Origin: Marsupella aquatica
Lineage: Eukaryota; Plantae; Marchantiophyta
Direction of reading: 5' to 3'
Length of the DNA: 64,000 bases
Assembly (NCBI GenBank): GCA_973895155.1
Contig: OZ316899.1
Coordinates: 5,087,241 to 5,151,240 of the forward strand
The notes under the pieces were generated by a model. That model was not told the origin of the DNA, searched no databases, and saw only the letters and a list, made by a program, of their open reading frames with translations. Each line of letters starts with the position of its first letter. Position 1 is the first letter of the stretch. The position numbers and the translations under genes are program-made. Shown in pieces: positions 1,575 to 55,942 of the stretch.

Positions 1575-1847
1575 TGGAAATGTTGGACAATGTCACAAAA
1601 TGAAAGGGGTGTTCCTCAACCCTAAATTGGTAATCATTGTCCATTGAAACCTCGAACGACTCTCAGATTTTGAAACGGTAACAATCGTGGCATTAAATAT
1701 TTTGTCATTTGTTTTGTATCCGTTAGGATGTCCAATTGATACACAAAGACAAGTTAATTTAAAACTCTTTATATATTCCGTGGAAAAAACATACACTGGA
1801 TGCTAGCAAAGATCGCTACCAAAATTGTCACAGTATCTTAACCTAAA

Positions 1848-2379
1848 TTATGCCTCACTAGAGATGAAGAATCTGCCAGTATTGATCCTACTCCTTCTGG
1901 TCAGGATCGGGACGGGACTTTGCCAAATTAGAAGACATCTCTTCGTCCGGGACACCAGTTGCTCGACGGTATATGTCTTGGGTGAAACCATGCTCCCTCC
2001 TCTAACTAAATGCTCGTATTGGGGCTCTGTAGACAGGCCTTCGGCTGCTCCCGCTCGCAAAATTTGAATCCTGAAAATCAGGAGATCCCAACACCTTGTG
2101 CTTTCAAAGCTCTAGACGATGGGGCCAAATTGTGGCAGGATCAGACGGAACATGGAAGAAGAACCGATCTTCGAATAGAAGAGCGGACTCATCCTTGAGC
2201 CATGGAATGTTCCTCTCCCTTGGACTCATTCCCTCATTTGGTGGGAGGCTATTCCTATTTCGGATGTCTGAAGTGGCAAAAACATACGTCTCAGACTCCT
2301 GCTCCGTGGTCTCCTCTTCCTCTACAATGGGACACTTCCCATTATCGGGCATCATCCTCTGCATACCGTCCATGAGCAA
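1848..2379 (-). pseudogene. Possible upstream exon or ORF remnant of the MULE transposase gene
   Basis: ORF 2104-2379 continues past a stop as coding-like sequence, on the same strand just upstream of the transposase. No recognisable domain. Confidence 0.3.
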
Positions 2380-4689: not shown

Positions 4690-5435
4690 AAACCGGATCA
4701 AAAACCGGGTGGGAAACCGGATGGGAAGCCGATTCAACTTCCGGATGGAATAACTTTTTACTCTTCAGGAGTTGAAGTGTCAGGCTTCACCGATGTGGAG
4801 TCTACTGCTGGATCAATGGAGTTGAGAGGGTTTGGCATGAAAGTGATACCTCCAAAGGTAGTAGTAAAATAGGAAGCAATTAGTACATTTCTTGGTTTCA
4901 AAGTGAAAGGTTTTGCAAAAATGAGGTCTTGAGATAATGTCTATTGGTGTAAGTAAAATATAGGAGTGCCAGAGTAATAAGAATTTGACTATCGAGTCTC
5001 TCCATCTTCCAATGAATGGGTATATCTTTTCATAGTATCCTTTCATACTTATCCAACCATTTTGATTGGTTAAGATCTTTAGCCATGGATCATGCTTCCT
5101 ATTGGTCCAAAGTCAGACATCTTGAAGGTCAAATGGTGTGGAAACAACGCTTCAAATCTTCATTCCATTATTTGTCCGGAAATCTCGGATATCTCTTGGT
5201 TGCACCAGTTGGAGTCTCATAATATTAAGTGGGTCATTTCGAGTCCATTTTCAGACTTCTTTATATATATCTTAACCGCATCGGAAAGAGCTTTCCAACA
5301 CACTTTACAGATCTTGATTTGGATAAATGGTTTGAGAGTTATAGTAATTTTTCTACCGGATGGTATGTCCAAACCGGATCAAAAACCGTCTCAAAAACCG
5401 GATGGAAATCGCTTCAAATTCCGGATGGAATAACT
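4690..5435. repeat. Imperfect ~65-bp direct repeat (AAACCGGATCAAAAACCG...TTCCGGATGGAATAACT) in an unclassified ~2.3 kb non-coding segment
   Basis: Copies at ~4690-4755 and ~5371-5435. Confidence 0.7.
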
Positions 5436-5895
5436 CCTCAATTTCCATCACTTAGTTGGTGTAATTTTTTCCATGAACTACTGGAAGGTGGGGTAACACA
5501 ACCTTGATAAAAGATTGAGCTACTTGTTGCTAAAATGCACTGATTAATTCACCTTAGAATTAGCCGTCTAACTCAAATTTGTGAAAAGTTGGATCTCAAT
5601 TCCAAAGTTAAACCTTTGCTTGAGGGGTTGAAGTAGGTCTCTCCTCGCTATCAGATTTTCCCAATACCAATCCATTTATGGTTTTATTTCTCTTTCACTA
5701 TTGAGTCGGATAAGGGACCATAACATCTTTATATGCACCTTGGCATGATTCAAGCTTAATATACTCACAGATGCTTAAATAGTCATTCAAGGTCCTCAAC
5801 ATGGTCATTGAAAACTATTTTTTTCACATAAGATAACTTTTCTATCCTTAAGGGCTTAACCCCTCTATTACAGAAAAACACCGAGAAGAGCAGTC

Positions 5896-8800
5896 ATGTC
5901 TCAAGACACACACGGTGTTCCGATGGGAGGCAGAAAAATTCCGGATGCGTTCTCCAAGGTGCTTGCTCGTCACTCTCTTTTGTTTGGGTTGAACAAAAGG
6001 GGGGACATGCAAGAACCTCCTAGGATTCCACTTTGTCGACTCATGAACATGGACTTGGTGAGGTTGCTCCAGGTGCAACGGGAGCTATCGACAATCTTGT
6101 CTCCAAGTTCAGGACGAATGGATACGTTGACGAGTTGGCCAACTTTTATGTTTCCGTCTGTGATGCGGAAGGTGCTGAGATTCTGGTCACCGAAGATATT
6201 CGAGCAACTTGGGACGATGTTTGGGTTCAGCAGAATGTCGGGTATGAAGCCGAATGTGACAAAAATCCGGAATTCTTGTGCCTTAAGGACAAGATGTTTT
6301 CAATTTTTGATGGGAACCATCGTCTATATTCATGGATGATAGTTGCTAAGCAGTTCCCCGATGACAAAAAGTATCATCCAGGGTGATATGTCACATTTTG
6401 AAGGGGAAACGTGATTTGTTCATTGAGATTGAGTCGGCGATGCATGGCTCAACAAGTAAGTTTTCTGGCTTTGTTTCACTTTTGTGCAAGTGGTTTAGGT
6501 TCCCTAAGTGATTGCTTAATATGCTGATATCCTTTTCCTTTGCGGGTCCAGGCTTGGGCAGTGTGTTGTGGAGAATTCTTGGATTTTGGATGCAGACCGG
6601 GTGAAGAAAATCCTCCAATATGATCTGTCTTACTATGAGAAGATCATCGATCCTGCTAGCTACAAGATCTTTGAAACTAGGATGGCGAATGTGAAGAATA
6701 AGGCGTGGTACTAAAAAAAATGAGTTGGGATGCACTCACATACATTTTGTGCTCTGCAAACATCATTGCGGGTCTAGAAGATTTGCGGGTTCGTGAAGAG
6801 AGAGCCATTCAAATGAATGTGCCGTGGTCAGATGTTGAGAGGAAGAGGCTTCATGACGAGATGTTTGCCTTGCAGCTAAAAGAATGGTCTGTCCGCAACA
6901 GTAAATTAGCAGTTGTTTTGAATCCAGAATACGGGGGTTTTCTTGTCAAATGCTCAGAGTTGTATGAGTATTGCGAAAGGGAGAAGCGAGAAGGGCGTCA
7001 AACATTGGGTTGTGGATTGGATCGGGCTCGAATGTACACTGCTGTCTCAACTCTAGATCCACTTCTTCGATGCCAATTGATTGAGGAACAGTGTAAGCCA
7101 GAATTGAGGAAGCAATGGTTTCATCCAACGGGATTTTCCGAGAATGAGACCAAGCAATGGTGCCATACATGGTCCATGTGGTCATCGGTTGAATCCATTT
7201 CTAAGCATTTGCTGATAGCTTGTTTGGATGAGATTGGATTAAGTGCTCCTCAAGATCGTTTAGAGTCAGTACCTCAAAAAGATCTTGAATCTTTGAAGGA
7301 GCAGATCCTCGATGATTTCAAGGATTATGCATTTCGTGTGAGATCTAAGTTTTTTTGAGCAATTTGGATAACCAAGTCTGGTGACAAATTTGATGTTGAT
7401 GTAATTCGTTGAAGGGCTAAGCAATATGTTTATCACTTCTTTGTAGATCGGAAAATTAGTAGTGATTCGTATTTTTGGTGTTACCCCCTTTGTTTTGCTG
7501 GATGGGCAAGCATTGGGCGAGATGCAGACGGGAATGTTACGTATCCTCAGTTTTCAATGTATCCTGTGGATGCTTCTCACCCCAAAAGAGACCTTATTGC
7601 GTGGGAAGTTTTTAATTGTCCCTGGTATCTCGATAGTGATCAATGGTCAACTACTTTTGACCAAACGAAAAGATCGGCTTACACCAAGATTGTGAAGGGC
7701 AAGGAGCCCAAGTATATTTTGTTTGAGATCAAATTTGGTCCAGTGGAGAGGGAAGAAATGGCTTGTGCCATGATGGAGGAAGTATGTTTGAGGCAAGAGG
7801 TGAATGTCGACCGCACTCAAAATTCAAGAGTGAAAGTCGGGGCCCTTGAAAAGGCAGATTTTCAAAAGGTTTCCGCTTCCCAGCGGTCTCTCAGAACAAG
7901 TAAGTATTGCTAGCGAACCTCGCTATCAAAATAAGTGATATTTTGATCGTGTATTCCTGAAGTTTACATTCTGACCTCCGAGTGCTTTTTCAGAAAAGAG
8001 GCACTCATTGAGTTCACACAACCAACCGGGAGAGGAAGCCAGTCCAAACACAGATGAGGAAGCATCTCCTGAGGAAACTAGTAAGAAGAAAAAGTCAAAG
8101 AAGGTGGCAGATTTGGGGAGCTCCAAGAAAACAAAGAAGAAACGCAATTTTGTTGACTTGGATGAGGAGGCCGAATTTTATTCAAGATTAAATTCTGGTT
8201 TGGAGAGGAAAGGAATAGAGTTTATTGCATGGGAAAATAGACATATTTCCTCAAGTCAAGTTTGCTTGACTCCGCCAACTCAATTGTCAACCAAAGGAAG
8301 AAACCATCATGGGTTCGAGAGTGTGACATTTGGATGAAGAGCCTCCTGTCGAGAGGCCTTAGGGAATCTCCGATAGTTTTGGACAAAAAGTCTCTTCTGG
8401 GAACATGTTTTGATTTAGGTTTTGTCTATCTTCCTACAGGACTCCGTCCCCTCATTACTGACAAAACGGTTCCAGAGTGGAATGTTTGGGACAAATCCCT
8501 CCCCACACATTTTTTCAATATCTCCAAACAGTATCTTGTTGATAATGGATTCCTTGCTGTTCTTCATAGTGATGATTTTAATCACACCTCAGCCGTATAT
8601 AGTGCTGCTCAAGCTCGTGGTTTTTTCAAGCATGCACTGTCGTACACAATTCTGCTTCCGGCTCCTTTGTGGAAAGAGAATATTGACTTTAATGTAAGTT
8701 CACTTTTATTTTGATAGCGACCCTCGGTAGCAATCACCTTTTGGAAAAAGTTCTTCAAGATTTGGGTTCATTTTCTAAATCGTTGTTCTATTTTCCCTCC

Positions 8801-9795
8801 AGGTTTTCAATCTTGTTCTCGATGTCTTCTGTAAGACGTCTTTGGACGGGATAGTTCCAAAGGATAAGAAGTTTCAGGCACTCTCTTCTTTGGAGGATCC
8901 CTCTGTGTCATCTTTGATTAGCCTCTCTATTCCCAAAGAGAGTGGATTGTTGGATATGGGTTTTGTGGGGTTGGCTCGTGTTTCTGTAGGTTTCATGCAG
9001 AAAGTCATCGAATTGTTGACAAATCCGGGGGATGTAGTTTTTGATTGGACTATGGGTGAAGGTTGGAGTTATTTGCCAGGGATTACTCCGGGAGACATGT
9101 CATTGGGCTAGAGGATTGTCCGGATTTTGGGGAATCAGCTGCGGATGCTTTGCGAGCAGTCCATGGGAGGAAAGTTCAAGTGGAAACAGTTTCAGACTTT
9201 TTGGATAAAGGGAAAAAGTATGTGGTTGACTTGGGTGATGAAGAGGAGGACCCGTATGCGATTCTTGGTGATGATGATCTCCAGACTCCATCACCTTCAA
9301 AGGAAGATTCTCAGTAATGATCGTAAGCTTCTTCCCTAAATCTCGACCTTTAATTCCTTTTTGACTCTCTTTGCGAAATAAAAATTCACACATCTCAGTT
9401 CAGTCTTGCTTCATTTCCACAGAGAAGGGAGTTTGGAATGGAAGCAGGAGGAACAATTTCAACTACGTCGCAAAATTAAGGAGGCGTTTCTGGATACTCC
9501 CGAAAAGCCTTGGAACCTCCCTGAGTATATACAGAAAGGAATGAAGGATGTCGACAAGAGTCCCATAGTGACTTGGGAAATGAAGGGGCGATGATTGTTG
9601 AGGGGATCTGATAGGAAGTTTTTGAGGCATCCTCTGATTGATAATGAGGCTGTGCGTGCCTCAAGATTTGTAGATGAGGAGGCTAAGTCAACATCGACCT
9701 CTGAGAGTAGTGAAGTATCTACTAGCGAGGAAAGCACAAAGAATTCAGGTTCTGATAGTTCTGTTGATGTTCAGTCAGGATTAGATGACTATTGA
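5896..9795 (+). pseudogene. ParB/Srx-like domain fused to a beta-class DNA amino-methyltransferase-like domain (copy 1); multi-exon, frameshifted
   Basis: ParB-like: RIPLCRL..VRLL..IDNLVSKFRTNGY..MFSIFDGNHRLYSW. MTase: motif IV-like FDLGFVYLPTG, then FFNISKQYLVDNGFLAVLH, then SVGFMQKVIELLTNPGDVVFDWTMGEG..SGRHVIGLED (motifs X, I, II), which is the beta order. GT-AG introns at ~6456-6551, 7900-7993 and 8694-8802; the last joins in frame (KENIDFN|VFNLVLDVF). Confidence 0.8.
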
Positions 9796-10156
9796 TTTTG
9801 TCCAAATCTTCTTGATATTTCCTCATCCTGGTGGATAAATATCACTTTAGAAAGAAGTGGTACTTTTTATGTATTTGAGAATGGAAAATTAGTTATGTAT
9901 CACCTCAAGTCATCTCAATAAAATACTATTGGTACTATTTTGGTTCATAGGGTTTTGGATATGAAGAAACAATTTTTGCTGGCGAGGTTCGCTAGCAACT
10001 CTCACGATGGATTGAAATTGTTGATATTAGTTTTTTTCTCCCAAATAGTGAAGTTAAATGTGAGGTTTTGCTTCGCTAGCAATGTCTGTCTCGCTATCAA
10101 TATGAGTTTTTCCTATCTGCTTTCTCTTTTTTACTAACATTGTTAAAAGCCCCGAT

Positions 10157-39855: not shown

Positions 39856-42080
39856 GTGACGGCTCACATTCGCACCTCGAGCAAGCAGAGTGCAAGCAGA
39901 AGCCAACAACTGTCAGTTGCGGAGGAGAACACGGGGGGCATAAGCAGCTACCGAGCAATGCGAGAGAAGGGAATGAGCAACATCAATCAAACAACACATT
40001 TTTGGGGATGCTTGTTCGAATGGGCAAGTGAGTACGTCGGGACTTACGAGGAGGAAGAATCAATAAGAGCAGCCTGCGAGCGACAGAAACTTGCTCGACT
40101 GTGGGAATTGCAGAAGACGGCCTTCTTAGGAGGAGAATTCATCAAGGCTGAATTCCTGTGGATACCTACTGGCGACAAGCTTGACAACCTTCTAATTTGA
40201 GACAACAAAATTGTCAGCATCGAACAAGCCATCAACAATTGCAACAACAAACATTGGGACCTGAAAGGTTGCATGGTGGCGTGGACGAAAGCAACAGTGT
40301 TGGGAGAATCGTCAAGTGCGACTAAAATGAAGAGGAAAATGGCCAACAATGAAGAAAACACACCGTCCAAGAGGATGAGGTTGGCAGTATCAAGGAAGCT
40401 AGCCGAACAAGGGAGGAAAAGAGAGGAGGAAGCCAAGGAACAAGAAGTCGACCCAGTCAATGCCGTCCCTACCCAAGATGACACCTGGAAGGGCTGGGCA
40501 ACAATAATACCACTGGCAGGGCAGCTACATTTTGCACGAGAAGAGGATGCATGCTTTACAGCCATGCAAACCAAGAAGTACCAGGGCTTCATGGCCGGAT
40601 CAGGCTTGGAGACCTTTGTAAGACTACCATGGCTGAAAAGGGAAGTGTCAGAATCAAACTTGTTTGGTTATCACATGCCGTTGGTATGCCGGTATGCCTG
40701 GAGTCAAATCTTTGCCCCGATCATTCCTCTGTAGGCTAGAGCGCCAAAAGAGGAATCAAAACCAAGGCCGGCAGCAAAGCAACCCAACCCGCCCGACACC
40801 CTCATGATAGCTCAGGTCTTTCGATAGGTGCCGGAAGCCGGGCCGATGCAACAACCGGCCATGCAGAGCCTCCTGCACATATTGAACAAGGAGAAGGCGG
40901 CTCTAGCACCAGAGGCAACAGTAGCAGGCACCAAAAGAGCCGCTAGAGGAGAACCCATGGCCGGGGCCATAAAACCAAGTAGGCCAGAAAACAAGCCAGG
41001 GGTGCGGATGTATGTAGGAGCCTCTAGTGAAGAATCAGAGGAATTGGAACCCAGGGTTCCCAGTCCTGAAAAGGAGTGTGGAAGTCAGGTGCGAGAGCCA
41101 AAAGGGCAAGCCGCACGCATGTATAATCCCCGGCAGGAGGCCAGGTTTACGGCTAGTCCTAGAGAGGACAAGCAGGCACCAGGATGCCCGAAGGCCGGGG
41201 AATACGTGGAGGAATACCATGAGGACTTGGGTTACGGGTCGGATCGCTCGGTACTAGGGGTGCAGACCTGCGGCTGTTTTATCCCCAGACTACCAAGAGT
41301 GGTGCGTGGGGATCCACAATAGTAGAGGAGCCCGGAGTCTTCCCCACCGGACGCACCTCAACCAATTTTTTATGGAAGACAACACGCCGATCAGGAGTTG
41401 CAGTAGCAATTCAATGACCTCGAGGAAGCAACCCTGGCCAAGGAGAAGGACTTGCCAGGCGATGGATGGCCGGAGGACATTTGGCAACTGGCAGGGACTC
41501 AAGCCGGGCCTTTGCCCACGTTTGAGGAGATATGGAGGGCGGCTTGGGAAAGAAGGCCACATTGGGAGATGCCAACATCTCCTAACCACTCCACCTATGC
41601 ATGTTCCAAAGCCCTGGAATATGGGAGGATGTGCGAGCTCCTCGCCCTTGGCATCTTTGGGGACGAGTTAGAGAGGGGAGCCTTCATCCATAAGGAGATG
41701 TTGGAGAAAATCCAATTGGAGGACGCATTGGCCTTGGAGAGGATGAAGAAGGAGGAAGTCATCCGACGGCTAAGAGAGAAGGAAGCCAAGGCCGGAGAGT
41801 TAAAGGTGGCCAAGCAGGCCCAGGACGAGCTTTGAGTTAGGAAGCATGAAATAAGTATCATGCAGGGGCAACTAGCCCAGACTCAAGAAGACTTGGCCGA
41901 AGCCCTCAAGGAAAAGGAGAAGTGGAAGTAGGAGCTGAAGAAGGTAAAGGCAGCTCACACAACGACCTGCAACAGAGCCATGATCGAGGCCCAGAGGAAG
42001 GAGCGGGCACTGAAGGATGAAATCAAAGGATGCCGCAAGGCCATTCAGCAGAAACAAGCCAAACTTGATGAGACCTATAG
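39856..42080 (+). pseudogene. Gypsy B 3' extra ORF, first part (continues at 54952-55942)
   Basis: Same-strand ORF remnants after the integrase with a coiled-coil end. The frame continues across the Sola insertion. Confidence 0.65.
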
Positions 42081-42096
42081 ATCAGCCTATTCATTA

Positions 42097-42440
42097 AAAG
42101 TGTATTATTATTTGATTTATATACATTTGGGCAATGAAAAGTGTACTTTTGGGCTTGAAAAAGTGTACATTTGGCCAATGAAAAGTGTACATTTGGGGAT
42201 AGAAAAATGTACAATTGGCCTAAAGAGTGTATATTTGGGCAATGAAAAGTGTATATTTGAACATCAAAATAGGTACATTTGGCTTTAAAAGTGTACATTT
42301 GAGTACATTTGGCCTAGAAAGTGTACATTTGAGTGAAAAAAACATACATTTGGCTTAAAAAGTGTACATTTAAGTGCATTTGGTCTAGAAAGTGTAGCAT
42401 TGAGTGCAACAAAGTGTACATTTGGCCTAAAAAGTGTACC
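42097..42440. repeat. Left subterminal array of AAAGTGTACATTT(GG)
   Basis: More than 10 copies spaced roughly 20-30 bp apart. Confidence 0.9.
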
Positions 42441-42686
42441 AACTCTTATTATAATCATTTAAAAGAAAGGAATGAATAGAAAAATATTTTTAATTATGCA
42501 AAAAAAACAAACATTCATATTCATAACGATCAAAAGTTTAGAAAATGAGGAGATAGTATGACTAACACTCAATGGCATGGTCTCACATTAAAACTATTAA
42601 AATAGTAAATAACTAGTAGGTACTTGTTACTATCTAAGTAACTATCTATTTAATAATTATTATAGCTTCGCAAGTAACAACTAAGT

Positions 42687-45600
42687 CTACTTGTCCATCC
42701 TTTGGAGATAACTTTGGACAGTTTGTAGAACATTTCGAGGAATCTTCAAACCTCTGCCCGCCATGTTTTCTTCTTTCATGCCAGATTTAAAACCATACAT
42801 TGCAGAATTTGCATACTGCCAATGTTGAGCGTTCTCACCAAACCCTGGATCTCGTTCCCATGTCTTAGTGGACATGAAGCAGTTTAGATACCGTGCACTC
42901 TCAATCACATCAAGTTTAGAGTGTTTAGGCCTCCACCATTTGACTGGAAACATTGGAGCATATTGTTGAGGCAGAGGAGGGTTTGTTGGAGATGTAGTTG
43001 GGACTTCATGCTTAGGGTCAACCGAACCCAAAGCTCTCACCAACCAGAAATGACCTCCACCATTTTTATTCTCCCAATCATCCTCGGGTCGAAGAAATAC
43101 AAAGTTCCCTTCACAAATATCCTGTAGGGGAATCCACCGTCCTTGTTCTCTCTCAGCTCGAGATCCAACAAATGGTGCCGCTTGATCTTCCATCTCTTCC
43201 AAGACCTCATTTTGAAGAGCCGTCATCTCCGCATTCTCCTCATCTTCACTTGGAGGACCACTTTGTTCCGGTTGGTTGACCTTGTAACCAGTGCCATGGT
43301 TAGTCTTAGGCCAAAATCCGTTTTTCAAGGGAAATTGAGTACTTCCCTCCCCTTCTAGTGCAAGCCCATTTGTCAACAACTCCACAATTCTCTCCCAATA
43401 TTTCACAAGAGGAAATCTTTCCTTATATGCTATAGATGTCTCATCAGTGCAACTCCTTCTCAAAAAATCAAGGTACTTGGTAAGAAATGGGATAATCTCT
43501 TCAGATTTTTTGTGTATCTCTCCCATGGATTTAGCTAAGGGCTCTCCACTAGGTAAAAGAAGAGAATTTGTTGTCAGATCTGTTGCCCAAATGCACCTTC
43601 CACCAACTGGAGTCCAAGCTTGCTTTACATGGGACTTATACTGAAATATTGGTACATTATCTCTCATAGAGAAAAAAAAATGATACGGGTTTTGAGTGAC
43701 CTTGAATATCTTTAACTTTGAAAGTTTGAAGATATTCTTTGTAAGATGCAACTTCTTGTATCAATTTGGGAACTGGATGAATGCTCTCACATTCCCAAAC
43801 CTCTGCCATAAGAGCAAGGAGAGTTGCAACTTCCTTGTGCTGAACTTGATATGATACCTTCGAAAAGAGTGCATCAACATCTTTGTGCATATGACCAACC
43901 ATAAGAAAAGACATTTGAACAGTTTCAAATACTCCTCTACTCACAAACTCACTACAAAATGCCATGACAGTCTGGTTTTTGTTATCCTTTGTTGAGTTAT
44001 CCATTTGCAATGTTAGGTGCCTTGGCAAGGGCTTGAAAGATGGACTGCCTTGTTCCCCATGCATGTCACCTCCTTGATCCTCACCATGTTGGGTGGAGAC
44101 CGTCTCCGTCTGACTCTCGGCTGCATCTTCAGAACCAATATACCTATTCATTGGAATACTCTTTGGTTCCAAATATCCCTTAAAAAATGCATCAAAGTCA
44201 AGAAGGGCTTGAAAGAAAGGTCTATGAGGTTCCAAATAAAGGCCATCCAACATGTCACCTGTCTTGTCTCCATTGTACTCTTCAAGGTCTTGAAGACACT
44301 TAGCCAAGGATGTCACCGTGAAATTGGCATCTCCTGGCCAAAGGCCAGTGACACTAAAGTGTGCATAGACTCCTGGATCCCTTCCGTGGGTCAACATCCC
44401 TGTGAGAGCAATAGGTAGAGGCATCCCATGACCCGAAAGTGATTTAGGAGTACTGACCATTTTTGGAATCCACGTCTTTGCTTGATCCATCTTGTCATGA
44501 ATGATGCAAAGATATTCCCCTGGATGTTGCTTAGCCATCACTCGATGAGCATTGTAAACATATCTATGTGACATTTGCTCACAAAGATGTTGCGCTCGTT
44601 TTTCTTCAATTTCAGCACGTTCTTTTTTCCTTCTTTCTCGCATCAAACTATCTTTGTATTCACAACAAAGAGTACACTTGGCAAATACACCATCTTTATG
44701 GAAACTGAAGTTTGCGAATGATTTGCTCCAAATCTTGTACAGAGTATTCTCTGTAACTGGAGGAAGCCCCTCTTCCTTCATCTTTGTTCTCACATCTTCC
44801 AAAATCTCCAGCTTCTTGTAACATGTTGGAAGACGATATTCAGTGGAGTCTGTCCCATGAGCCCCAGCATAAGGTATATGAGGCATGGACTCTGCATTTC
44901 GAGTCAAAAAATCCTCCAACAGAGCTCGTGCATGCAAGGTATTTGACCTTGTTTTCATGGAGCCCGAGTTTCCATGGAACCCAATTTTGCAGCCCTCCAC
45001 ATATCTCCTTTTGTAGTCATAATATTTTGTGTGGCTAAAGCCATGGATGATTGCAAATGCAAGACACATACGACCATACCCTTGAGAACATGGTGCCCCT
45101 TATCACGAACATCATCTTCTCTATAGTGGAAGAGGTTGAAAATGTGTGATGTTTTTGACTCACTAGACATCCCGTGAAATTCTATCCGAATATCTTCTAT
45201 GTCTTCTCTTGGCATAGTCAGACAACATTTCTGCTTGTAACAATTCTCTCTTTTAATTTCATCAATCGAAGCTTCCGTTGTTTTTGAAACTGTCTTGGTT
45301 TCCAACAGCCTTCTCTTCTTTTCAATCGGATCTACATGAGTCCTCTTGTTGAAATTGTATGGCCTTGTGCGCAGCATTCCCCTATCATTTACATTTGGAT
45401 AGAGATCATCCCTATCCACCGACTCCATCCTCTCTGAACCTTCAACCAAAATGTCCGACAAAAATTTCCCATTTGCAAGTAGTTTTGTTGAATCAATTTG
45501 CCACCGAACCAAAGTAATTACTCCCCTGTGGAAGTTGGGAAAGTATTGTGATTCCACCACATCTTTCACAGCAATCCCTACATGGTCCTCACCAAGCATT

Positions 45601-46430
45601 TCATCGTCAACCGCTGCCATTTCTTGAGGCAAAGTGATGGTCCCCGTGGCAACCCTATTGGTTCGATCTGAACCGATGTATAGTTTGACCAACTCTGACA
45701 TCCAATTTGACCGTTGGAAATAGTCACAATTAGTTTTAGAAATTTCAGCTGAGGGAGACTCCACAACAAAACTCCGCTCTATGTTGATATCATCACCCAC
45801 ATCCTTCTTTGAGAAACTCTTTCTACTTCGGACATCTGCCACGTCCCAGAGAACCCATGAGTCTTTTGTCTCGTCAATTGTTTCAACCCCACTGTGTTTG
45901 TAAGGTAAAACCGTACTCCCATGAATGACATCAGTGACCCTCACACTGATCCGTGATTCACCAAGTAAAATGTTGTGACATCTTTCCATTGGATTTGTAT
46001 TGAAAACAACTCCAAGGGCTACACAACACCCAAAGATAAACATTTCAACCTCATCCCCTTGCCTCGGAGTGGTCGATGAGTCCTCCTCTACAATTGGATT
46101 TTTCTCCAAATTACTCTCGGGTCTATTTGAACAACTACCTACACTAATGCGTTTTTGAGAATTTGTTGTCATTGATAGATATGCGCAAGACAAATCCCAA
46201 ATAACGCAAGAATCAATGGCATCAAAAAGGTTTTCTGCCCGAGGCATCGGAAATGGTAGTTTTGTGGTTCGGTCAAAAACTTTCTCAATGAGAACTCCCA
46301 TTCGATTCTCTCTCAACAATATCTTTTGAACACTATCTTGCGGGTTGACTTTTTGAAATGTCCCGCTCGCAACATCGTAACCATCATTTGTCAATATCAC
46401 ATTGTCTCCTCTCAAAAATAATCCGGTCAT
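42687..46430 (-). pseudogene. Sola-like DDE/D transposase, ~1240 aa, with two frameshifts
   Basis: FAKCTLCCEYK, CIIHDKMDQAKT, LTLQMDNSTKDNKN, FLMVGHMHKDVDALFS. Frameshifts at ~45065 and at the A9 run ~43672 join ORFs 44955-46430, 43657-45069 and 42687-43751. Confidence 0.85.
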
Positions 46431-48170
46431 TCCTACAACGTATTCACCTGCACAATTTTAAATGTAAAGTATTAGTTAAGAATGGTCCCAACTAGGAAGC
46501 ACATAGGTGTCAACCCTCTCCAAGGACAGTGCGCATATCGGGATTATCCCCATCAAGCAAAATAATAGGTCCCCAAAAAATTCCTATCTAGCCCTAAGAT
46601 CCCTGATCCCAATTTAGACATAGGATAGGGATGATCCCTGTCCAAACAATGGATAGGGTCTGTCAGTGTCCAAACGGCGAACAAGGATCATCCCTGCCTA
46701 AACGGCGGATAGTGTCTGTCACTGTCCAAAAGGCGGACACGCCTGATCCCTGTCCACATGGTGGATTGGGTCTATTCCCTGTCCAAACAACGGACAGGGA
46801 TGATTCAAGGAAACTTTTCATATTGGGGTCCAATCAAGAAAATACCTCAAACGGCGGACAGGGAGCATCTGAAGAATGACCGCGGACACGGATCCCTATT
46901 GAAAGGGTAGATAGGGATCATCCCTATCAAAACGGCAGACAGGGACCACCCCTATCCAAACGGTGGACAGAGATCATCCCTATCCAAATGGTGGACAGGG
47001 ATCATCCCCATCCAAATGGCGAATACGGATCATTATCCAACCAGAGGATCCAAACTGTAGAGGATCCAATAAAGTGTTGTAGTTCATATGGTCCTCTACA
47101 GTCCTCTACGGTGGACAGGGATCATCCCTATCCAAATATTGGACAGGGATCATCCCTATCCAAACAGCAGATAGAGATGATCCCTATCCAGATAGCAAAC
47201 AGGGATGACCCCTGTACGGACAATTGACTCTACACAGTAATTTAATGTTTGAGCAAAGAATGGTTGGATTGAGATGATCCCAATCGTGAGTTGGGCTGGG
47301 ATTTTTTCACTTCAACCTTAACTTAGATATAGTAATTCCTAAATTTGCGGATATCAATGGAATATGCTACAATTCTATAATTAGGTTTAAAGTTACCTGT
47401 AATGGAAATGATTCTTGAACCCAAAACTCAATTTAGTTTATGTTGCAAACCAAGGATTAAAATACTGTGTTGAAGGGGTAGTTATCAGTAACCTGGTAAA
47501 CTAAATGCTTCAGGGGTGTTGAAGAAATTAAAACTAGATGTTCTATCTGGAAAACAAGAGTGTCTCAATGGGGCTCCATAATCAACGGACCTGGTTGAGG
47601 AACTGAACAAAAATCTAGAAATGAAAATACCAAATGAGGACCAGCCGGACAAGTATCTTATACCAGTTGAAGATCGCCCTTATGGATAAGGTGATGCGTG
47701 ATCAGCCTTAAGCAATGGCGAGTGGATTAGGTCGGGCGAGTGGATTAGGTCGGGCGGCGCACTTTAGGGCAGCCGTGCATTTAGGGTTTTCCACTCGCCT
47801 CGGCCTCCCACGTGTTCAGTGTGCCTTGCCTTGCCTCGGGGGGGGGGTAAAGGAGGCAGGAGGTCCCACTTGGGCCTCATTCTTCATTCCCTCCTCGCTC
47901 CTCGCTTGCTCTCCTCCTCGCTTGCTCTCCTCCTCGCTCGCTCTCCTCCCTCCTCCCTCCTCCGTCCGCTCCTCCTCTTCTCTACTCCTGCTCTTGCGCT
48001 CCTTCGCTCGCTCCTCCGCCTCATTCGCTTCCAATCTCCTTCGCTCTGACGCCTCCGCACTCCTCCGCTCTGCCTCCGCACTAAAGGTTATCCCCATAGC
48101 CGCCACGTTAATTGCCCTAGATCTAACACTCTGCAATCCTCCACGTGTCCATAAGGCCACGTGTCACACG

Positions 48171-51100
48171 ATGAAGCCATCCAGACCTATTCCAGTGTGT
48201 CTCGTTAGTGAGCCAATAGAGGAGACAGACCTCTCATCCATTGAGGACGTGGTAGAGACGGCCCTCGACGATTCCAGAGCCTTTCAATCGCTCAATCCAA
48301 GTGAGTATCCCAGTAACAAGTTGAATATTTGTGTGGTGGACAGAGATGATCCCTGTCCAAGTAGAGTCCAAATAGAAGATAGTGATCTTTATTAGGAATT
48401 GGACAGAGATGATCTCTATCCAAATGGATGGAGATCATCCCTGTCCAATTGCATAGATATCATTTATTTCCAAACTGACGATAGAGGATGTCCTATCAGA
48501 CGATGCTGAGGACCTTTATTAGGAATTGGATAGAGATAATCCCTGTCCAAGTAGAGGATAGAGATGATCCTTGTCCAATTCATAATAACGATTGTCAGTA
48601 TCCTCTCATTGAACAGAGATGATCTTTATTACAAATTGGACAGAGATGATCCCTGTCCAATTCGTAATAACGATCGTCAGCATCCTCTCATCGAACAGAG
48701 ATGATCTTTATTACAAATTGGACAGAGATGATCCCTGTCCAATTCGTAATAATGATCGTCAGTATCCTCTCATCGAACAGAGATGATCTTTATTACAAAT
48801 TGGACAGAGATGATCCCTGTCCAATTCGTAATAATGATTGTCAGTATCCTCTCATCGAACAGAGATGATCTTTATTACAAATTGGACAGAGATGATTCCT
48901 GTCCAAGTAGAGGATAGAGATGATCCCTGTCCAATTTTTGTCAATTACGAAAGTAAGATTTACAAACTAATATGCCTGGATGGGACTATTGCAGGGAGCT
49001 ATCTAAATGCATTGAAACCATAGATTTTAGACGCAGATTGCTCCGAGGGAGTCTTGTTGGAGCAGAGCAGAGAAGATTTTCATTGGGGCCTTGAGTTCTC
49101 CAGAGTTGATTTTGATTTCCTTAGCACGTCAACGAGACGGGATCCCATTTTGTGCATAAAGGTCAGAACTACAGATCAGGAGACTCTTGTACTCGGACCT
49201 GTAGTCTTCATTGGAATTGAAGGAAGAGGGTTTGTTTCCGTCATTCTTGAGCTCCATGAAAGGATACAATGGGTTAAACTACATCTACCATCAAAATCAT
49301 ATTCTTCAGAATTCAATGTTGAGTGGTCTGCAGCTGGAGAACTTGGCGTGTTGGCAATGGGATTTTTCCCTAAGTCGTATTCAACTCAAAAGGTGACTGC
49401 TGGAGTGAAGGGGATTCTTCCACTTGACATCATGTATGGGTTTCAATATGTGAAGCTGAATATGCATAAACACCAAGGGAATTGTACATTTCCGGTGACA
49501 TGGATTTTAAATAATTTGCTTGACAAGGCAGGATTCCTATCTTCAAAATCAGGTGTTTTCCTAACTTGACAAGAAAATTGCATTTGCGGAGGAGTTTGCA
49601 ATGGATAATGCAAAAAAGTGGGTAGAATCATTACCCAAGCCTACAAGTGTTGCACCAGTAGTGGTGAACAAGCCTACAAATGTTGCACCAGTAGTGGTGA
49701 ACAAGCCTCCAGTAGTTGTTAACAAAGAAGTTCCGAAGCCTAGAAAAATATCTCAGGAGACAACAACCGGGACTGCAGGAACAACGGCCAGGATAGCCTC
49801 CAAACAAGTGGTAGGGAAGCGAAGATAAAGAGAGAGGAAGGAGCGCAAGAAAACTTAGACACTGCCAAAGGAACCCGAGAAGAAGCCAGTAAAGAAGAAA
49901 CAGAAAACTGACAAGACTATTGCGCGATCAACTCCGACGGACGTACAGATGCTCCCAGAGGATGAGGGAGACAAACTTGATGCCCCGGAGGAGAAGAAGG
50001 TCTTAGAAGGGAATGATGTTCTCCAAAGAATAGAGCAGTACTATACTTTTGGGATAAATGAAATATTTTCTATTCCAGTGGAGAAAATTTATCCTGCTCC
50101 GGCAAGGTTATGTTACAGGATGCTCAACAGTGCCCATGTGAAGCACATAGCCGAATCCATGGTGAAAAACCCTGGACATGAACCTCATGTTGCGGACCTT
50201 CTTCCTTACAATCCGAAGCTTAGAAAGTTGTTTCATTTTGACAGCACGGAGAACGACCGCAAAGACCTTCTTGCAGGAGTGAAGAAAGGCGAGATTGTTT
50301 TCCTTGCCGTCAGTGGGCAACATTCTGCTAGGGCGGCCAAATGGGTTCTTGAGTGGGCCGAAACTGATGCCAAGCTCACAGTTTTGGCAAAAAAGTTAAA
50401 ATATAGGAAGGCTAGATTATTGTCAGACCTTACGCCATCGGCTATAATGGTTGAGCACTCAATGAGATCAAATGCCATCAATTCTTCGATGGTGTTTCAA
50501 TCGTGCTTCAAAGATACAATTGTTCATGCAAGAAAACAATTCCTTGAAACTGGAGACCAAGAAAGCCAAAGCACGGGGACAACAAATCAAACGCCCAAGA
50601 CAATCAGAAATTTCAGGTGAGTTCTTGTTTGGACAGAGATGGTCTCTGTCCAAGAGTGTGACCTTTGGTTACGTTGATTTTTGTTCAATATATTTTGGGT
50701 TATGACTTGGATGGAGATGGTCTCTGTCCAAGAGTGAGACCTTCCATTCTGTAGATTTTACTTCATTCTACTTTTGGTTATGGCTTGGACGGAGATGGTC
50801 TCTGTCCAAGCAAGGGATTGTGTGTTGTCAAATCTCATTGATTGTAGATAACTTACAACATTCTCCCTAATTTTTGACTGTAGGATTATCTGGCATTGGC
50901 AAGGATGACCATGGGGAGAAAAGACTTGAAAAATGTATACTGGTTACTTTTTGCCGGCAATGATCTTTTCGAGTTATGGCGGTTAGTGTGCCAGATGTGG
51001 ATGGATGGAAAACTTCCTGATGGGGCAGGTACACAGGGAAACAAAAGGTCCAAAAAGGCAATAACCGTCGCCATGTTTCGTTGTTTTGATGGTGAAATCT

Positions 51101-53253
51101 CAAATAGAGATGTGACCAGAATTTTGAACAAGGTGAAGTCGGGTCAGATTTTATTGAAGAAAGATCCGACTAATAAGTCAGATGTTCCAATGATGGAGGA
51201 GTTTGCAAAGGAGGTGAAGATATTGATCAAATTGAAGTCTCCTATTGGAGATTACTACTTCAAGAAGGATCCAAAACACTTCCCAGCAGATACTGATTGG
51301 GCTAAAGTGATTGAAGCCCTCCCATTATTAGGTCCCGATTCGGAGTTGAACAGGTGCCAAAGAGCAGCTGGCGATGTATGGTTGACAAATTTGTTGAAGT
51401 CGAATCATACAAAGGAGAGTGAGATATTGCCAATGACATTGGTGATGCGTCTAGATGATATTTACTGTCAAAAGTTTGGCGGTGGGACAAGTTCTCGGAC
51501 CCAGCCATGGGTCACATTTTTTAGTAACAACCTAATGAAGACTGTGGATCCGAAGTCGTTGGAAGAACAATCTCCAACATGCCCTCTTGCAATTGTTGAA
51601 TTCAGCCGACTTCAGCAAAAAGAGTGGACTGAAGTAGAGATTTTGGTCCTCTTCCAATATATAGTAGAGCTACCATAGAATCCTACCATTGTTGTGATGA
51701 TAACTGTCCATCCGGGTTATCTTGTACTGAATGTCCTAAGCGCTCTTTGTAAATTAGGACATTCAAAAACTCTGAGTATTCACATTGAGTATGGGAGTTA
51801 TTACCGAGATGATCAACCTCACCCTCAAGACTCATGTTGGAAGGGAGGAATAGAAGAAGTTATCTTTGCCGGAATTTCTCGCGAGGAGAACGTCAGCTGG
51901 GATGAAGTGTTCAAGCCCAACCAAATGAACCCAAAATGGGTGTACGGTGAAAAGGATACTGATTTCGTGGTTGAGAAGGTCAAGGGAAAGGGAAAGGCCA
52001 AGGACGCGGACGAGGAGTCATTGCATGAAGATCTAAAAAATATGATGACCCCAGAAGAGGCGGCAATCCTTCTGCACATGGCACCTCGATTTGAGACTGT
52101 CGGCGCTCGGGGTGGGTGGGTGAATCCTCACGCCAAACCCACACGGATGATCCAAAAGATCATCCAAACACTGTCCGAGCCGGGGGATTTGATTCTTGAC
52201 TTTTTCTCTGGCAGTCAAGTGATGGAGGCATCCCTTTTTTCTCAACGTGAATGTTTTGTTTATTGTGACTCTCAACATGAGAGACATTTTTTGGAAGCAT
52301 ACGCTTTGTTCCTTTGTGAGAAGGTTCCCACCATCAAAGATCGTTATGATCGCTATGTCGGTGGAAGTTCTAGACATTGGGAACCCTCTTTTGCCGCTGT
52401 TGCTATTGAGGATGAATCAGATGGTGATCAAGAAGATGGAGCTGACCAATCAGTCAAAGACGATGGGCCATCGGAGGCATACGTGAAGAATTTGGATGAC
52501 TGAGTTGGCGAGGGTGAAAATATTGACCTTGTGGAAGACGATATGATTGTTGGATCTGCACCTTGCAGTTCACCAATTACAGATGTTGCCCCCATGGGCC
52601 CCAACGAGGGCCAATATGATGATAACTTGGATAGAGATGGTCTCCATCCACAAGTGCCTGAACAAGAGATGGAAGTTGATACTTTTGAAAAACTTTCTTC
52701 AAACAACCTTCTCAATCAAGGTGCGGAGAGGCATGGTGAGTCCAATGAACTTGACACATTGGGATTGAGACCACAGCCCATCCAAATAGCTGACATTCCC
52801 ATGAATGAAGCAAGTGCATCCACGACTGCTGACAACCAGGCAGGTGCTTCAATTTGTCCCGATACACTCTTTTCCGCTTTTGATGACAAATTGGTGTTTG
52901 TTTGATCACAATCAAGAAGTCCCGTTATCCTTCCACTCTCAAAAAAGAAAGGGAAGAGAGTAGGATCAACTGGATATAAGTCACTTGAATATGATTGTCG
53001 ATGTTACGTGTGGAAAAGTGGACCCGATGTAGGAACTGAAGTTGCATTGGATGCTGCTCAATCAATTTTGACCAATGACTCGTACAAAAAGCACAAGAAA
53101 GATCCAACTTATAGAAGTGGAGAATTGGGATTGATAACTCCAGTTTGGTCTGCACCTTATTGGGTAGAGGAGAGTACCTCCGATGTCAATTATGAGATCC
53201 AACAAGAACTCGGTGATGATATCTTGATTGATGAATATGGATCGCATTGTTAG
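48171..53253 (+). pseudogene. ParB-like domain fused to a beta-class DNA amino-methyltransferase-like domain (copy 2), ~1350 aa, two introns, several stops and frameshifts
   Basis: Exon 1 (48171-48300) joins in frame to 49037 (GTGAGT..CAG); intron 2 is 50617-50883. ParB-like: FSIPVEKIYPAP..YRMLNSAHVKHIAESM..FLAVSGQHSARA..MRSNAIN. MTase C-terminal motifs: VNPHAKPTRMIQKIIQTLSEPGDLILDFFSGS..SLFSQRECFVYCD. Confidence 0.82.
48556..48904. repeat. 82-bp tandem repeat (~4.3 units) in intron 1; each unit has one full and one degenerate palindrome
   Basis: Palindrome starts at 48556, 48638, 48720, 48802 and 48884; the sequences between them are near-identical. Confidence 0.95.
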
Positions 53254-53509
53254 CCAAGGTCTAGATTGAGCAATGTGACCTTATCAATTTGATATAATAT
53301 AGTCTGTATAATTATACTTCAAGTTTAACAATTAGAGCATCAGTATCAATAAGTATCCATCTCCTCTTTATGGTTTCTCAATGAATCTGATCAGTATGCA
53401 AATATATTTTCTTTGTGGTTGGCTACTTGTGTTGGATTGACAGAGATGATCTCTATCCAAACTTCAAATGTGGTTTTATCTCTAAGATTGGTATTTGTTG
53501 CACTTGCAG

Positions 53510-54546
53510 AACCAAGACCTTGTTCCATCAAGCGCAAATTGTTGATTTTGGATCTTAACAAAATACTTTGGGATTCAGTTGAATTCCAAAGCAAGGGCAA
53601 ATCCAGAAATGTTGTGATCCCAAGTGGAGTGCATTGGGATAGAAAAAATGGAGTTAGTCGCATGTACACAGAAAGGCCAGGGCTCCATGAGTTTCTAAAG
53701 TTGGTTTTTGACCGATTTGACGTTGCAATTTGGACATGTGCTGGGGTACATCGAACAGTGAAAATGCTGAACATGATGTTCACTGCTGAGGAGCGGTTGA
53801 AACTTAAGTTTGTATTCACACAAGTGGAAGCCTTTGACACAGGCATTCAAAGGCGTGACATTACAAACGGAAAGGCAAATGTGCTACTGAAGGATTTTTG
53901 GGTGGTATGGAGTGGATTTGGAAATCTATATGATGAAACCAACACCCTCCTTGTGGATGACTCCCCCCTTAAGGCATTTGCCAACCCAAGCATGACCGGA
54001 CTATTTCCAGTGCCCTACACGCATGCCAATGGTGGAGATAATTTTCTTCTAACAATTCTTTGGCCTTGTCTTGAGAAACTATCCCATGCAAGTGACATTA
54101 GATGTTATCTTCTTCTTAACTCTCCACTGTGGTCTCTATTGCACATAAAGAGAGACAAGGTAAAAAATGATATTACTTATGATCAACTTAGTAAGAGATG
54201 TGCAACAAAAATTTGGAAGTCACAGTTTACGCATAGTGTGTTGGACCTCAATAGCAATGAGATTCCTTGGAACGTGAAGCATCGTATATGTAGTTTATGT
54301 CCTGAGGCAGAACTTGATGATGCACTTGTCACGTCACTTGCTAAAGCATTTGTAGGAAGGGACTATTCAGGTCCGCATAGAGAAAATCCCAGACACTTTT
54401 TGCGGGAGATTATAGCCATTAGGAACAACACCACCAAGTTTCAGCTCCCTGAAGATAAAGGGACTTGCAACCGTGACACTAGGGTAGATAGTAAAGGAGA
54501 TAGGGACACGTGCTCAAATACACATTGTAAGGAGCACTTTGTTTAG
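53510..54546 (+). CDS. FCP1/SCP (NIF) HAD-family phosphatase-like cargo; true start or upstream exon unresolved
   Basis: KLLILDLNKIL, ERPGLHEFL..FDVAIWTCA, LLKDFWVVW, NTLLVDDSPLKAFANP. The ORF is uninterrupted. Likely splice acceptor TTGCAG at 53509. Confidence 0.85.
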
Positions 54547-54821
54547 AGATATGACTCATGTTAAGCCCCCTAGATAGAAGAAATACATTGTAAATTTGGA
54601 GATAATTGTATATTATTTTATAATCTATTTGGAGTTATGTCATTTTGTTCACACATATTCAAGGGTTTATTTGTGCTGAAATGTTTTTATAAGTATGATC
54701 TCTATCCTACTATTCTTTGTGAAGTCATAAATAATGATCTCTATCCTATTATTCTTTGTGAATCAATAAATGATATAATATGTATTATTTATTAATATAA
54801 TACTAATATGATTTGGCCTAT

Positions 54822-54900
54822 AAAGTGTACATTTAGAGACCAAAAAGTGTACATTTGGGTTTTTTAAAGTGTACATTTGGGGACATGAAAGTGTACATTT
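54822..54900. repeat. Right subterminal array of AAAGTGTACATTT
   Basis: Four copies next to the right TIR. Confidence 0.9.
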
Positions 54901-54951
54901 CAAGACTGATTTGTGAACAAAAGAAAATACACTTTTAAGGAATAGGCTGAT

Positions 54952-55942
54952 ATAGGGGCATTGACAAGTTGAAGGGAGACCTCGAGGACCTGTCGGCCAA
55001 CTTTCAAGCCGAGCTATGGAAAAAGGACATCATGCTCGATGAAACCGACGACAAAATGAATAAGATTGAGTTTGATGTTGTCCATGAGCTCAACGCAGAG
55101 CTAAAGGCAACCCAGGAGGAGAGGGCGGCCTTATAGAAGGAGTTGGACGAGAACCTAGCCGAGTTGGAGCAAGCCGTGGGGATTTAGACGAAACCCTGGT
55201 GGAGTTGGAGGACGCCACCCAGAAGATGGAGAATCTGCAAAGGCGGGCGAACAACCAAACTGAGCGGTTGAGGAAGCAGTCCGAGGAGCTAAATTAGCTG
55301 ACCGCAACAGGTGGACCCCCGGTAGCGGCAATAGGGTTGCAGGGTGTGGTACCCTTCCCCTTGCCGGAAGTAAGTGGCAAGGGGAAGGCACCAGCTGCTT
55401 GGGTGGGGAAGGACAAAAAGTGGAAGCCTTCTGGGTCAAGGAGCCACACAGTTTGTCAGGCCACCGTGGCTGAGGTGGAGAGCATGGCACCAACCTTATG
55501 CAAGGTTGTGGCCGTCAAGGAAGCAGTCCGGGAGGTAGGCCAAGAAGACCGGTTGGGGGAGGCCATGATAGGCACCGACCCAAGGTTGCCAACCATTGAT
55601 CGACATCAACCGCAACCTTGGGAGGACAAGACAACCCAACTCATAGAACAAGCCTATGAGGAGGACCACTACGGCAAGGTAGCCGATGCCGGGAAGGAGA
55701 GAATAGAAGCCGCACGGGTGGGACCCCCACAGATGGAAGTCGGGCAGACAGAAGCCGGGGTGGCGGAAGCCGGACAGGCAGAAGCCGATGAAGCCGAGGC
55801 CAAAGTAGTGGTGGGGCCCAAACATGCCAAGGATGGGTTGACCAGGTCAGGAGCGGGTAACCTGTCAGAGAACAGGAGGCCTACATTGGCTGTCGAGGAA
55901 GGATTGGGGGCGTCCATTGAGGACCAGCCACCGGTGTCGTGA
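54952..55942 (+). pseudogene. Gypsy B 3' extra ORF, second part
   Basis: Reads GIDKLKGDLEDLSANFQAEL.. in frame with the sequence before 42080. Confidence 0.65.

Follow-up and report, generated by a model that had tools for sequence, protein, structure and literature searches.

A Sola1-like DNA transposon of the liverwort Marsupella aquatica with a conserved ParB-like, methylase-like and NIF-like module and family-specific palindromes

Analysis of a 64,000-nucleotide stretch of the genome of the liverwort Marsupella aquatica (contig OZ316899.1, positions 5,087,241 to 5,151,240; hereafter the window, numbered from its first letter) showed that positions 42081-54951 are a single insertion of one mobile DNA element of ~12.9 kb. 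The element encodes a transposase on the minus strand and, on the plus strand, an accessory cargo made up of a gene with ParB-like and methylase-like parts and a NIF-like gene. The same cargo recurs in related elements of the liverworts Calypogeia fissa and Riccia sorocarpa, and each element family carries its own palindromes at corresponding places in the noncoding DNA. We are highly confident of the identity of the element and of the conservation of its module; the explanation that best accounts for the results overall, and that we judge somewhat likelier to be right than wrong, is a Sola1-type transposon with a conserved module and palindromes that serve self-recognition.

The interval 42081-54951 is one cut-and-paste DNA transposon insertion with terminal inverted repeats (TIRs) and a 4-bp target site duplication (TSD): the left end (from 42081, ATCAGCCTATTCATTAAAAGTGTATT) agrees with the reverse complement of the right end (to 54951) at 25 of 26 bases, with one mismatch, and ATAG stands at both flanks. 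A preliminary description made from the letters of this stretch had reported both features, and its claim that genes and palindromes moved as one unit is borne out by the single mobile unit and its 4-bp duplication. It had further claimed that excision restores a host open reading frame (ORF). When the element and one ATAG are removed in silico, the flanking frame does continue (..AKLDETYR joined to GIDKLKGDLEDL..), but stop codons lie farther downstream and the frame has no Pfam match, so that the supposed host gene is not intact but a relic, in all likelihood left by another repeat. The landing sequence (41452-42080 and 54956-55140) is a coiled-coil-like frame with stops and, at a GC content of 0.53, is richer in GC than its surroundings. 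No paralogous empty site was found within the 64-kb window, and tblastn with the element ORFs revealed neither a second copy in the rest of the window nor a clear relative of these ORFs in the Mutator-like element (MULE) at 1-10150.

Insertions with the same type of end were found in Calypogeia fissa, where three of them have TSDs of ATAG (locus L007, 1514-14336), CACG (L008, 615-13660) and ATAA (L009, 1267-15178); the terminus ATCA.....ATTCATTAAAAGTG is common to these three and the window (4/4). A motif similar to the subterminal AAAGTGTACATTTGG repeat of the window element is present at the Calypogeia element end as well. In the window the AAAGTGTACATTTGG repeats have one orientation at both ends (10 copies on the left, at 42138-42411, and 4 on the right, at 54822-54888), not inverted as might be suggested by an element with TIRs, and the core of the repeat is nearly palindromic.

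The transposase is represented by three overlapping minus-strand ORFs (42687-46430, together ~1220 codons), the middle one of which matches Pfam DUF7869 (1.8e-40). The transposase is related to DUF7869 proteins from Riccia sorocarpa and Calypogeia fissa. Across 15 transposase homologues, IHD-MD and Q-DN..KDNKN never vary, with GHTHEDxD as a consensus, indicating that the catalytic arrangement is DDD. Relative to the single frame of L007, the window copy switches frame twice, at 45066/45060 and at 43688/43672; the second switch could be an assembly error, since it lies within a run of ~ten T, and the first lies outside such a run.

The Sola superfamily of DNA transposons was reportedly described by Bao, Jurka and Kapitonov in 2009. 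Its defining feature, a 4-bp target duplication, is present four times here, in the window and in the three Calypogeia insertions; Sola elements measure 2-9 kb, some >15 kb, and have already been reported from bryophytes (PMC10741241). Majorek et al. 2014 (PMC3985635), who place Sola1 in RNase H-like class E.10, give the RNase H-like cores of three Sola reference elements in their supplement, and we compared four motif blocks of the window transposase by eye with those of Sola1-1_AP from this source, no profile statistics or E-value being involved. The blocks align in equal order and content (window first: IIHDKMDQ with VFDLEKVL, GVYAHF..PGDANFTVTSLAKCL with GYCYMW..KRGSNEIGTCLLKFI, QMDNSTKDNKN with YSDNCGGQNRN, and FLMVGHMH with FLERGHTQ), and the fit of Sola2 (DGCAGQYKN..SHG) and Sola3 (SDNASSYHGN), likewise judged by eye, is poorer. 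By motif comparison only, the transposase thus appears to fit Sola1 rather than Sola2 or Sola3, which agrees with the earlier designation of the element as Sola-like. The features of the element are listed in Table 1.

Table 1. Features of the transposon insertion, in window coordinates
Feature	Position	Strand	Basis or location
TSD, left copy, ATAG	42077..42080	.	flank comparison
Left TIR, ATCAGCCTATTC..AAAAGTGTATT	42081..42106	+	25/26 versus right end; Calypogeia terminus of same type
Left subterminal array, 10 copies of AAAGTGTACATTTGG-like motif, 22-bp period	42122..42439	+	repeat analysis
Transposase pseudogene, DUF7869 core, DDD blocks IHDKMD / MDNSTKDNKN / GHMHKDVD	42690..46430	-	Pfam, motifs
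Palindrome cluster A, 7 sites, 28-bp period	46622..47190	.	~190 bp upstream of transposase start
Palindrome cluster B, 10 sites, 82-bp period	48337..48933	.	~100 bp upstream of accessory gene
Accessory gene exon 1, N-terminal domain, weak PH/PTB-like fold	49024..49566	+	model pLDDT 89; best Z 5.6
Lys/Pro-rich linker, broken by frame change ~49566 and stops 49826, 49856	49565..49858	+	frame comparison
ParB/Srx-like domain, near-invariant GQHS..AA, 1-nt deletion at splice donor	49859..50616	+	model, alignment
Intron 1, three palindromes, 78-bp period	50617..50883	+	GT..AG sites, Calypogeia P0077
Accessory gene exon 2: helical middle (50884-51675), beta-class methylase-like domain, acidic stretch, conserved tail	50884..53253	+	
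Single palindrome over probable NIF start codon (ATG 53446)	53437..53459	.	motif scan
NIF/FCP1-like HAD gene, open frame of 366 codons, motif I DLNKI	53446..54546	+	Pfam, alignment
Right subterminal array, 4 copies of AAAGTGTACATTTGG-like motif	54822..54900	+	repeat analysis
Right TIR	54926..54951	-	match to left end
TSD, right copy, ATAG	54952..54955	.	flank comparison

To follow the cargo beyond this copy, the loci surrounding Calypogeia transposase genes were retrieved and window ORFs mapped to them (L002 is the same locus as L008, and L006 the same as L007). In L002, L003, L006 and L009 the transposase lies on one strand and the N-terminal domain, ParB-like, middle, methylase-like and NIF-like parts lie on the other, at 29-66% amino acid identity to the window. 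The Riccia sorocarpa locus L011 has the transposase and the ParB-like, methylase-like and NIF-like parts in equal order, at 22-46% identity. Outside the coding regions and termini, no alignment is left between the window and the Calypogeia elements. In two other Calypogeia loci the cargo is missing wholly or for the greater part: just the ParB-like exon and the beginning of exon 2 survive in L005, and in L004 no cargo was seen within 8.5 kb. The family thus includes derivatives with internal deletions.

Substitution rates were estimated by the method of Nei and Gojobori. Between families, synonymous sites are saturated (pS 0.63-0.87), with dN at 0.24-0.83. Where it can be computed, the between-family dN/dS ratio (omega) is 0.15-0.39 in comparisons with the window and 0.07 between Calypogeia families 1 and 2, and transposase and cargo give similar values. 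Between members of a single Calypogeia family, which are 95-97% identical in DNA, the ratio is 0.48-0.67, as is expected of decay after insertion mixed with selection in the active lineage. Given that Calypogeia and Riccia have the same layout and that dN/dS lies well under 1, these comparisons mark the cargo as a conserved accessory module under purifying selection, not as a random capture or Pack-type debris. The preliminary description had preferred an accessory cargo to random Pack-type fragments and had named the presence of the cargo in other copies and its dN/dS among them as checks; the first found the cargo kept in five loci, the second gave no value near 1 either between or within families, and the preference stands. 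The reason originally given for it, that the genes are full length, does not, as the window genes are not intact; the evidence that properly bears on it is conservation across elements.

Comparison with Calypogeia also revealed how the accessory gene is built. In Calypogeia copy C7, exon 1 ends in ..TTC CAG before GTACTC and exon 2 begins with GAT TGG after ..TTTTCAG, and gene model P0077 joins both exons (..SRFQ to DWQVLAK..). The window has equivalent, canonical GT..AG sites (..TTCAG before GTGAGT, and ..CTGTAG before GATTAT). These shared splice sites and the join in P0077 indicate that a single gene, interrupted by an intron that contains palindromes, encodes both the ParB-like and the methylase-like part. 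A single Riccia model, KAL3695087.1 (P0127, 820 aa), likewise holds both parts, and a contig from the European Nucleotide Archive (ENA; L010) has intact reading frames for the two exons (572 aa and 771 aa). The searches reported below were run with the exons one by one.

All three genes that the preliminary description listed are present in the element; its wording that they are full length has to be withdrawn. Counted against the uninterrupted frames of L010, L007 and L009, the fusion gene of the window copy has seven lesions in total: the frame change at ~49566, linker stops at 49826 (TAA) and 49856 (TAG), the loss of one C from the last codon of exon 1, which shifts the frame at the splice donor, and exon 2 stops at 51676 (TAG; Calypogeia has ECGGKT there), 52501 (TGA) and 52903 (TGA), ahead of the natural stop at 53251. 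With two transposase frameshifts in addition, the window copy is structurally complete but dead. A short intron that would skip the stop at 51676 was considered and rejected, as the sole GT..AG pair is 15 nt in extent and the Calypogeia frame continues without a break. The decay is uneven; exon 2 has three in-frame stops and no frameshift over 2.4 kb, and the adjoining NIF gene is free of lesions. The genes had also been credited with introns of their own that hold palindromes. One intron, 50617-50883 in the fusion gene, is supported, and palindromes do lie inside it; the NIF gene is probably intronless, because the length of its open frame (53446-54546) resembles that of standalone homologues (332-388 aa).

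The likeness of the first part of the fusion protein to ParB emerged from structure prediction. The ParB-like region had no match to ParB in Pfam at E up to 10, nor by NCBIfam, PDB-sequence profiles or phage tblastn; HMMER found 80 relatives among 1.84 billion representatives, of which all those with a named source are from liverworts and the others are short unnamed contigs, and no host orthologue was identified among these 80. An AlphaFold2 model built on a 46-sequence alignment reached a predicted local distance difference test score (pLDDT) of 91.5 and a predicted template modeling score (pTM) of 0.85, and its best Foldseek matches were Noc, ParB, PadC, sulfiredoxin (Srx), KorB and SbnI only (best E 1.6e-3, probabilities 0.92-0.99). 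VIA-align, which is independent of Foldseek, placed 15 of 48,161 chains at Z of at least 2, and the top eight are all of ParB/Srx fold: PadC (Z 7.4; 98 aa, 3.1 Å), KorB (7.3), pNOB8 ParB-N (7.2), a serine kinase (6.6), SbnI (5.6), Atu1540 (5.6) and two sulfiredoxins (5.6 and 4.4), followed by SspE, Osa, Spo0J and BrxU. Since Z stays below 8, the predicted ParB/Srx fold is moderately supported. Box II of ParB proteins, GERRxRAA, is a nucleotide-binding motif at a strand-to-helix junction. GERRxRAA is absent from this family, which has at the strand-to-helix junction the near-invariant GQHS..AA (SGQHSARAAKW in the window); from its position in the model, we infer that this motif is the equivalent of box II.

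The N-terminal domain was modeled as a beta-sandwich with a helix (pLDDT 89.4). Its matches to PH/PTB-like folds are weak (Z at most 5.6), and Foldseek returned nothing for the model, so that the PH/PTB likeness is a lead and not an assignment. This domain (49024-49566) is the most divergent accessory part between families, at ~29% identity, and could be the part that determines specificity or binds protein. Elsewhere in the window, two adjacent frames of the MULE (5896-6386) contain stretches that weakly recall the two ParB-like signatures (..PPRIPLCRLMN.. and ..FDGNHRLYSW..) and follow in their order. Alignment of the MULE ORFs with the ParB-like motifs by hhalign was not significant (E 0.09 and 0.74); possibly another transposon superfamily has here a relative of the accessory gene that is very distant or has decayed.

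Palindromes were counted over the whole 64 kb with up to 5 mismatches allowed. The window palindrome, TGGACAGAGAT-S-ATCTCTGTCCA (23 bp), has 22 copies, all of them inside the element, and none in the other 51 kb, against an expectation of 0.02 from shuffled sequence; the ~25-30 palindromes of the preliminary description were thus located correctly and counted too high. The arrays arose by tandem duplication, the period being 28 bp in cluster A, 82 bp in cluster B and 78 bp in the intron, and single sites lie at 45396 and 52628 in addition to that at the NIF start. Between the two clusters, 47715-48395 is a GC-rich stretch of low complexity; it holds short tandem repeats rich in CT and a 226-codon ORF whose composition is simple, and it resembles the equivalent Calypogeia position weakly.

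Five families have five different palindromes of about 20-23 bp. Beside that of the window, these are AGCCTCGATAC-S-GTATCGAGGCT in Calypogeia family 1 (29-30 sites), CGCCTCGAGAT-S-ATCTCGAGGCG in Calypogeia family 2 (L009; about 15 sites), AGCCTCGATCC-AGG-GATCGAGGCT in the ENA contig L010 (at least 6 sites) and CTTCGGGACGCGTCCCGAAG in Riccia L011 (at least 6 sites). The window type does not occur in the Calypogeia family 1 element, nor the Calypogeia family 1 type in the window element. In all five families, however, the palindromes occupy the same positions, by the start of the transposase, by the start of the accessory gene and in the intron after the ParB-like exon; a palindrome before the NIF gene was found in the window and in both Calypogeia families. 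The termini and the subterminal motif stay alike between the window and Calypogeia while the palindromes differ. VANC, a protein of the Arabidopsis VANDAL elements, binds short motifs that are tandemly repeated upstream of the genes of its element and within their introns; from one related family to another the motifs change, and silencing is lifted once VANC is bound (Hosaka et al. 2017, PMC5735166). A VANC-like signature is present in the liverwort elements in the form of family-specific, tandemly duplicated motif arrays in noncoding parts, namely, the promoters and intron 1.

Palindromic parS sites are where ParB proteins attach and whence they spread along the DNA, which makes the ParB-like fusion protein the obvious candidate reader of the palindromes, and binding by an element-encoded protein seems to us probable. 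We propose that the element's own ParB-like protein would bind its palindromes, as parS is bound by ParB and the motif arrays by VANC; that the complex of protein and palindrome would label cognate copies, so that transcription or silencing could be controlled in a self-specific way; and that the methylase-like and phosphatase-like parts would serve as binding or regulatory modules, not as canonical enzymes. That the cargo acts in chromatin or transcription, as was suggested at the outset, is a step that we infer, and a role of the module in anti-silencing or transcription control, although plausible, falls somewhat short of an even chance. More speculative still, and in our estimate rather unlikely, is a full eukaryotic transposon version of a ParB/parS-like system, in which a degenerate ParB-fold protein, fused to a pseudo-methylase and partnered by a pseudo-phosphatase, would load on the family palindromes as a lineage-private address, thereby escaping or steering silencing and transcription; this would be an independent counterpart of VANC made from phage-type parts.

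The accessory proteins and palindromes might instead serve transposition itself, for example by helping in synapsis, in choosing a target or in tethering and partitioning the element after its excision, much as MuB/TnsC-type helpers or ParB-parS do. ParB proteins bridge and condense DNA, the module is conserved as strongly as the transposase, and the palindromes are element specific, all of which would suit such a function. The palindromes, however, are central, at promoters and in an intron, and not at the ends, where another repeat, AAAGTGTACATTTGG, similar in the window and in Calypogeia, is of the kind that a transposase usually binds; moreover, the palindromes differ completely between families with like termini. 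We therefore hold a helper function in transposition to be improbable and rank self-specific control of silencing or transcription above it, and above enzymatic marking, as the most likely reading.

Enzymatic marking, to which we give a similarly low probability, would have the cargo encode active enzymes: an element-marking N6A/N4C methyltransferase, possibly related to MpDN4MT1 of Marchantia sperm, and an RNA polymerase II carboxy-terminal domain (CTD) phosphatase. Both Pfam matches are significant. The methylase-like domain scores 30.4 bits against PF01555 (cut-off 26.7), and the family profile aligns to residues 223-266 of M.RsrI (2.9e-5), so that motifs X and I, which bind S-adenosylmethionine (SAM), are conserved; the NIF-like protein matches NIF (PF03031) across the full profile (1-160 of 160; 1.5e-14), has UBLCP1 (3shq; 4.3e-8) as its closest solved structure and retains haloacid dehalogenase (HAD) motifs II-IV, including VDDSP (motif IV). 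In addition, liverworts possess functional prokaryote-type N4C methylases with TSPPY (bioRxiv 10.1101/2021.02.12.428880). Against activity, noncanonical motifs replace the expected ones in all three enzyme-like domains (GQHS for GERR, LPGxLF for DPPY and DLNKI for DLDET). At the spacing expected of motif IV, ~180 residues upstream of motif I, the methylase-like family reads TIVVxIxVLPGxLF (ITVHPGYLV in the window), with LPGxLF (HPGYLV in the window) in place of beta-class (D/S/N)PP(Y/F/W), and the TSPPY of the Marchantia sperm N4C methylases is not present either. In the window and in Calypogeia, HAD motif I reads DLNKI; relatives, flowering-plant genes among them, have D(L/V)(N/E)G (DxNGxL in the wider plant subfamily), and its second Asp is missing throughout the NIF-like relatives examined, contrary to DxDx(T/V). 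As the canonical catalytic motifs are missing, neither methyltransferase nor phosphatase activity should be assumed. What stands of the original labels is, for ParB-methyltransferase, a likeness to ParB by fold and to methylases by Pfam and, for CTD-phosphatase-like, the NIF match. Phage searches gave no match for the methylase-like protein. Three Riccia gene models (P0174, P0175 and P0178; locus L012, 10001-12334) fuse the region of methylase motifs X and I (..STILDFFSGG..) to the NIF domain, which hints that the methylase-like and NIF-like parts act together or may be an artefact of gene prediction.

That the extra genes are passengers, host genes caught by Pack-type capture with no role for the element, is very improbable: the window copy is degenerate and NIF-like genes with the DxNG motif exist in flowering plants outside evident elements, but gene order, intron position and palindrome topology are kept across synonymous saturation and three liverwort genomes with omega well below 1, and no host orthologue stood among the few, where named liverwort, relatives of the ParB-like region.

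Several findings weigh against our preferred account of a Sola1-type transposon with a self-recognition module. The transposase is broken in every copy sampled, in the window and in Calypogeia, where all sampled frames have at least three stops, so that the family should not be taken to be active today, and within-family omega is just mildly under 1. The placement in Sola1 comes from the match by eye of four blocks, without profile statistics. Neither Pfam nor PDB profiles nor phage tblastn show the likeness to ParB, which comes from a predicted structure with Z below 8. Finally, no helix-turn-helix or other DNA-reading part was identified in the N-terminal and ParB-like domains, which were modeled.

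Few transposons are known to code for recognition of their own DNA beyond the transposase, the main plant example being VANC of Arabidopsis VANDAL. The Sola1-type liverwort elements share the signature of that system, a conserved accessory module together with fast-changing tandem motif arrays at promoters and in an intron, with a module built of ParB-fold, methylase-like and CTD-phosphatase-like parts whose active sites are all altered. If both binding and function hold true, the elements would represent a second, independent route to lineage-specific self-recognition of transposons and a eukaryotic use of the logic of ParB-parS. For annotation, our results suggest that many liverwort gene models labeled as hypothetical DUF7869, NIF ("TIM50-like") or PF01555-like proteins are transposon genes. 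In incomplete coverage of the literature, we found no paper describing this accessory module, none on ParB-methylase transposons in liverworts, none that mentions DUF7869 and nothing on Sola in Marchantia.

With Sola1, the liverwort element shares a 4-bp TSD, TIRs and large size and, as judged by motifs only, appears to share a DDD transposase with four blocks of like order and content; the published summaries of Sola, as far as they were accessible, describe no multi-gene accessory module and no internal palindrome arrays. With UBLCP1 and the FCP1/SCP (NIF) phosphatases of the HAD class, the element protein has the NIF domain and HAD motifs II-IV in common, and it differs from them in having DLNKI for DLDxT, in lacking a ubiquitin-like or BRCT domain and in being encoded by a transposon. 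Fusions of ParB with DNA methylases are known from phage ParB-terminase loci, and algae and chytrids have acquired some of them by transfer (Iyer et al. 2016, PMC4738411). The element gene resembles these in placing a ParB/Srx-fold domain before a beta-class amino-methylase-like domain in one protein, and its clustered palindromes of parS-like size on its own DNA recall ParB-parS; unlike the phage and plasmid genes, it is eukaryotic, spliced and transposon borne, has GQHS for GERR, has lost methylase motif IV, has an extra PH-like N-terminal domain and a partner NIF gene, and shows no sequence match to phage genes. VANDAL elements belong to the Mutator-like superfamily, and VANC, for which binding and loss of methylation have been demonstrated, is unrelated to the ParB/Srx-like, methylase-like and NIF-like proteins and reads direct motifs of 8-9 bp, not palindromes of 20-23 bp. 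What the two systems share is an element-encoded accessory protein and motifs that differ between related families.

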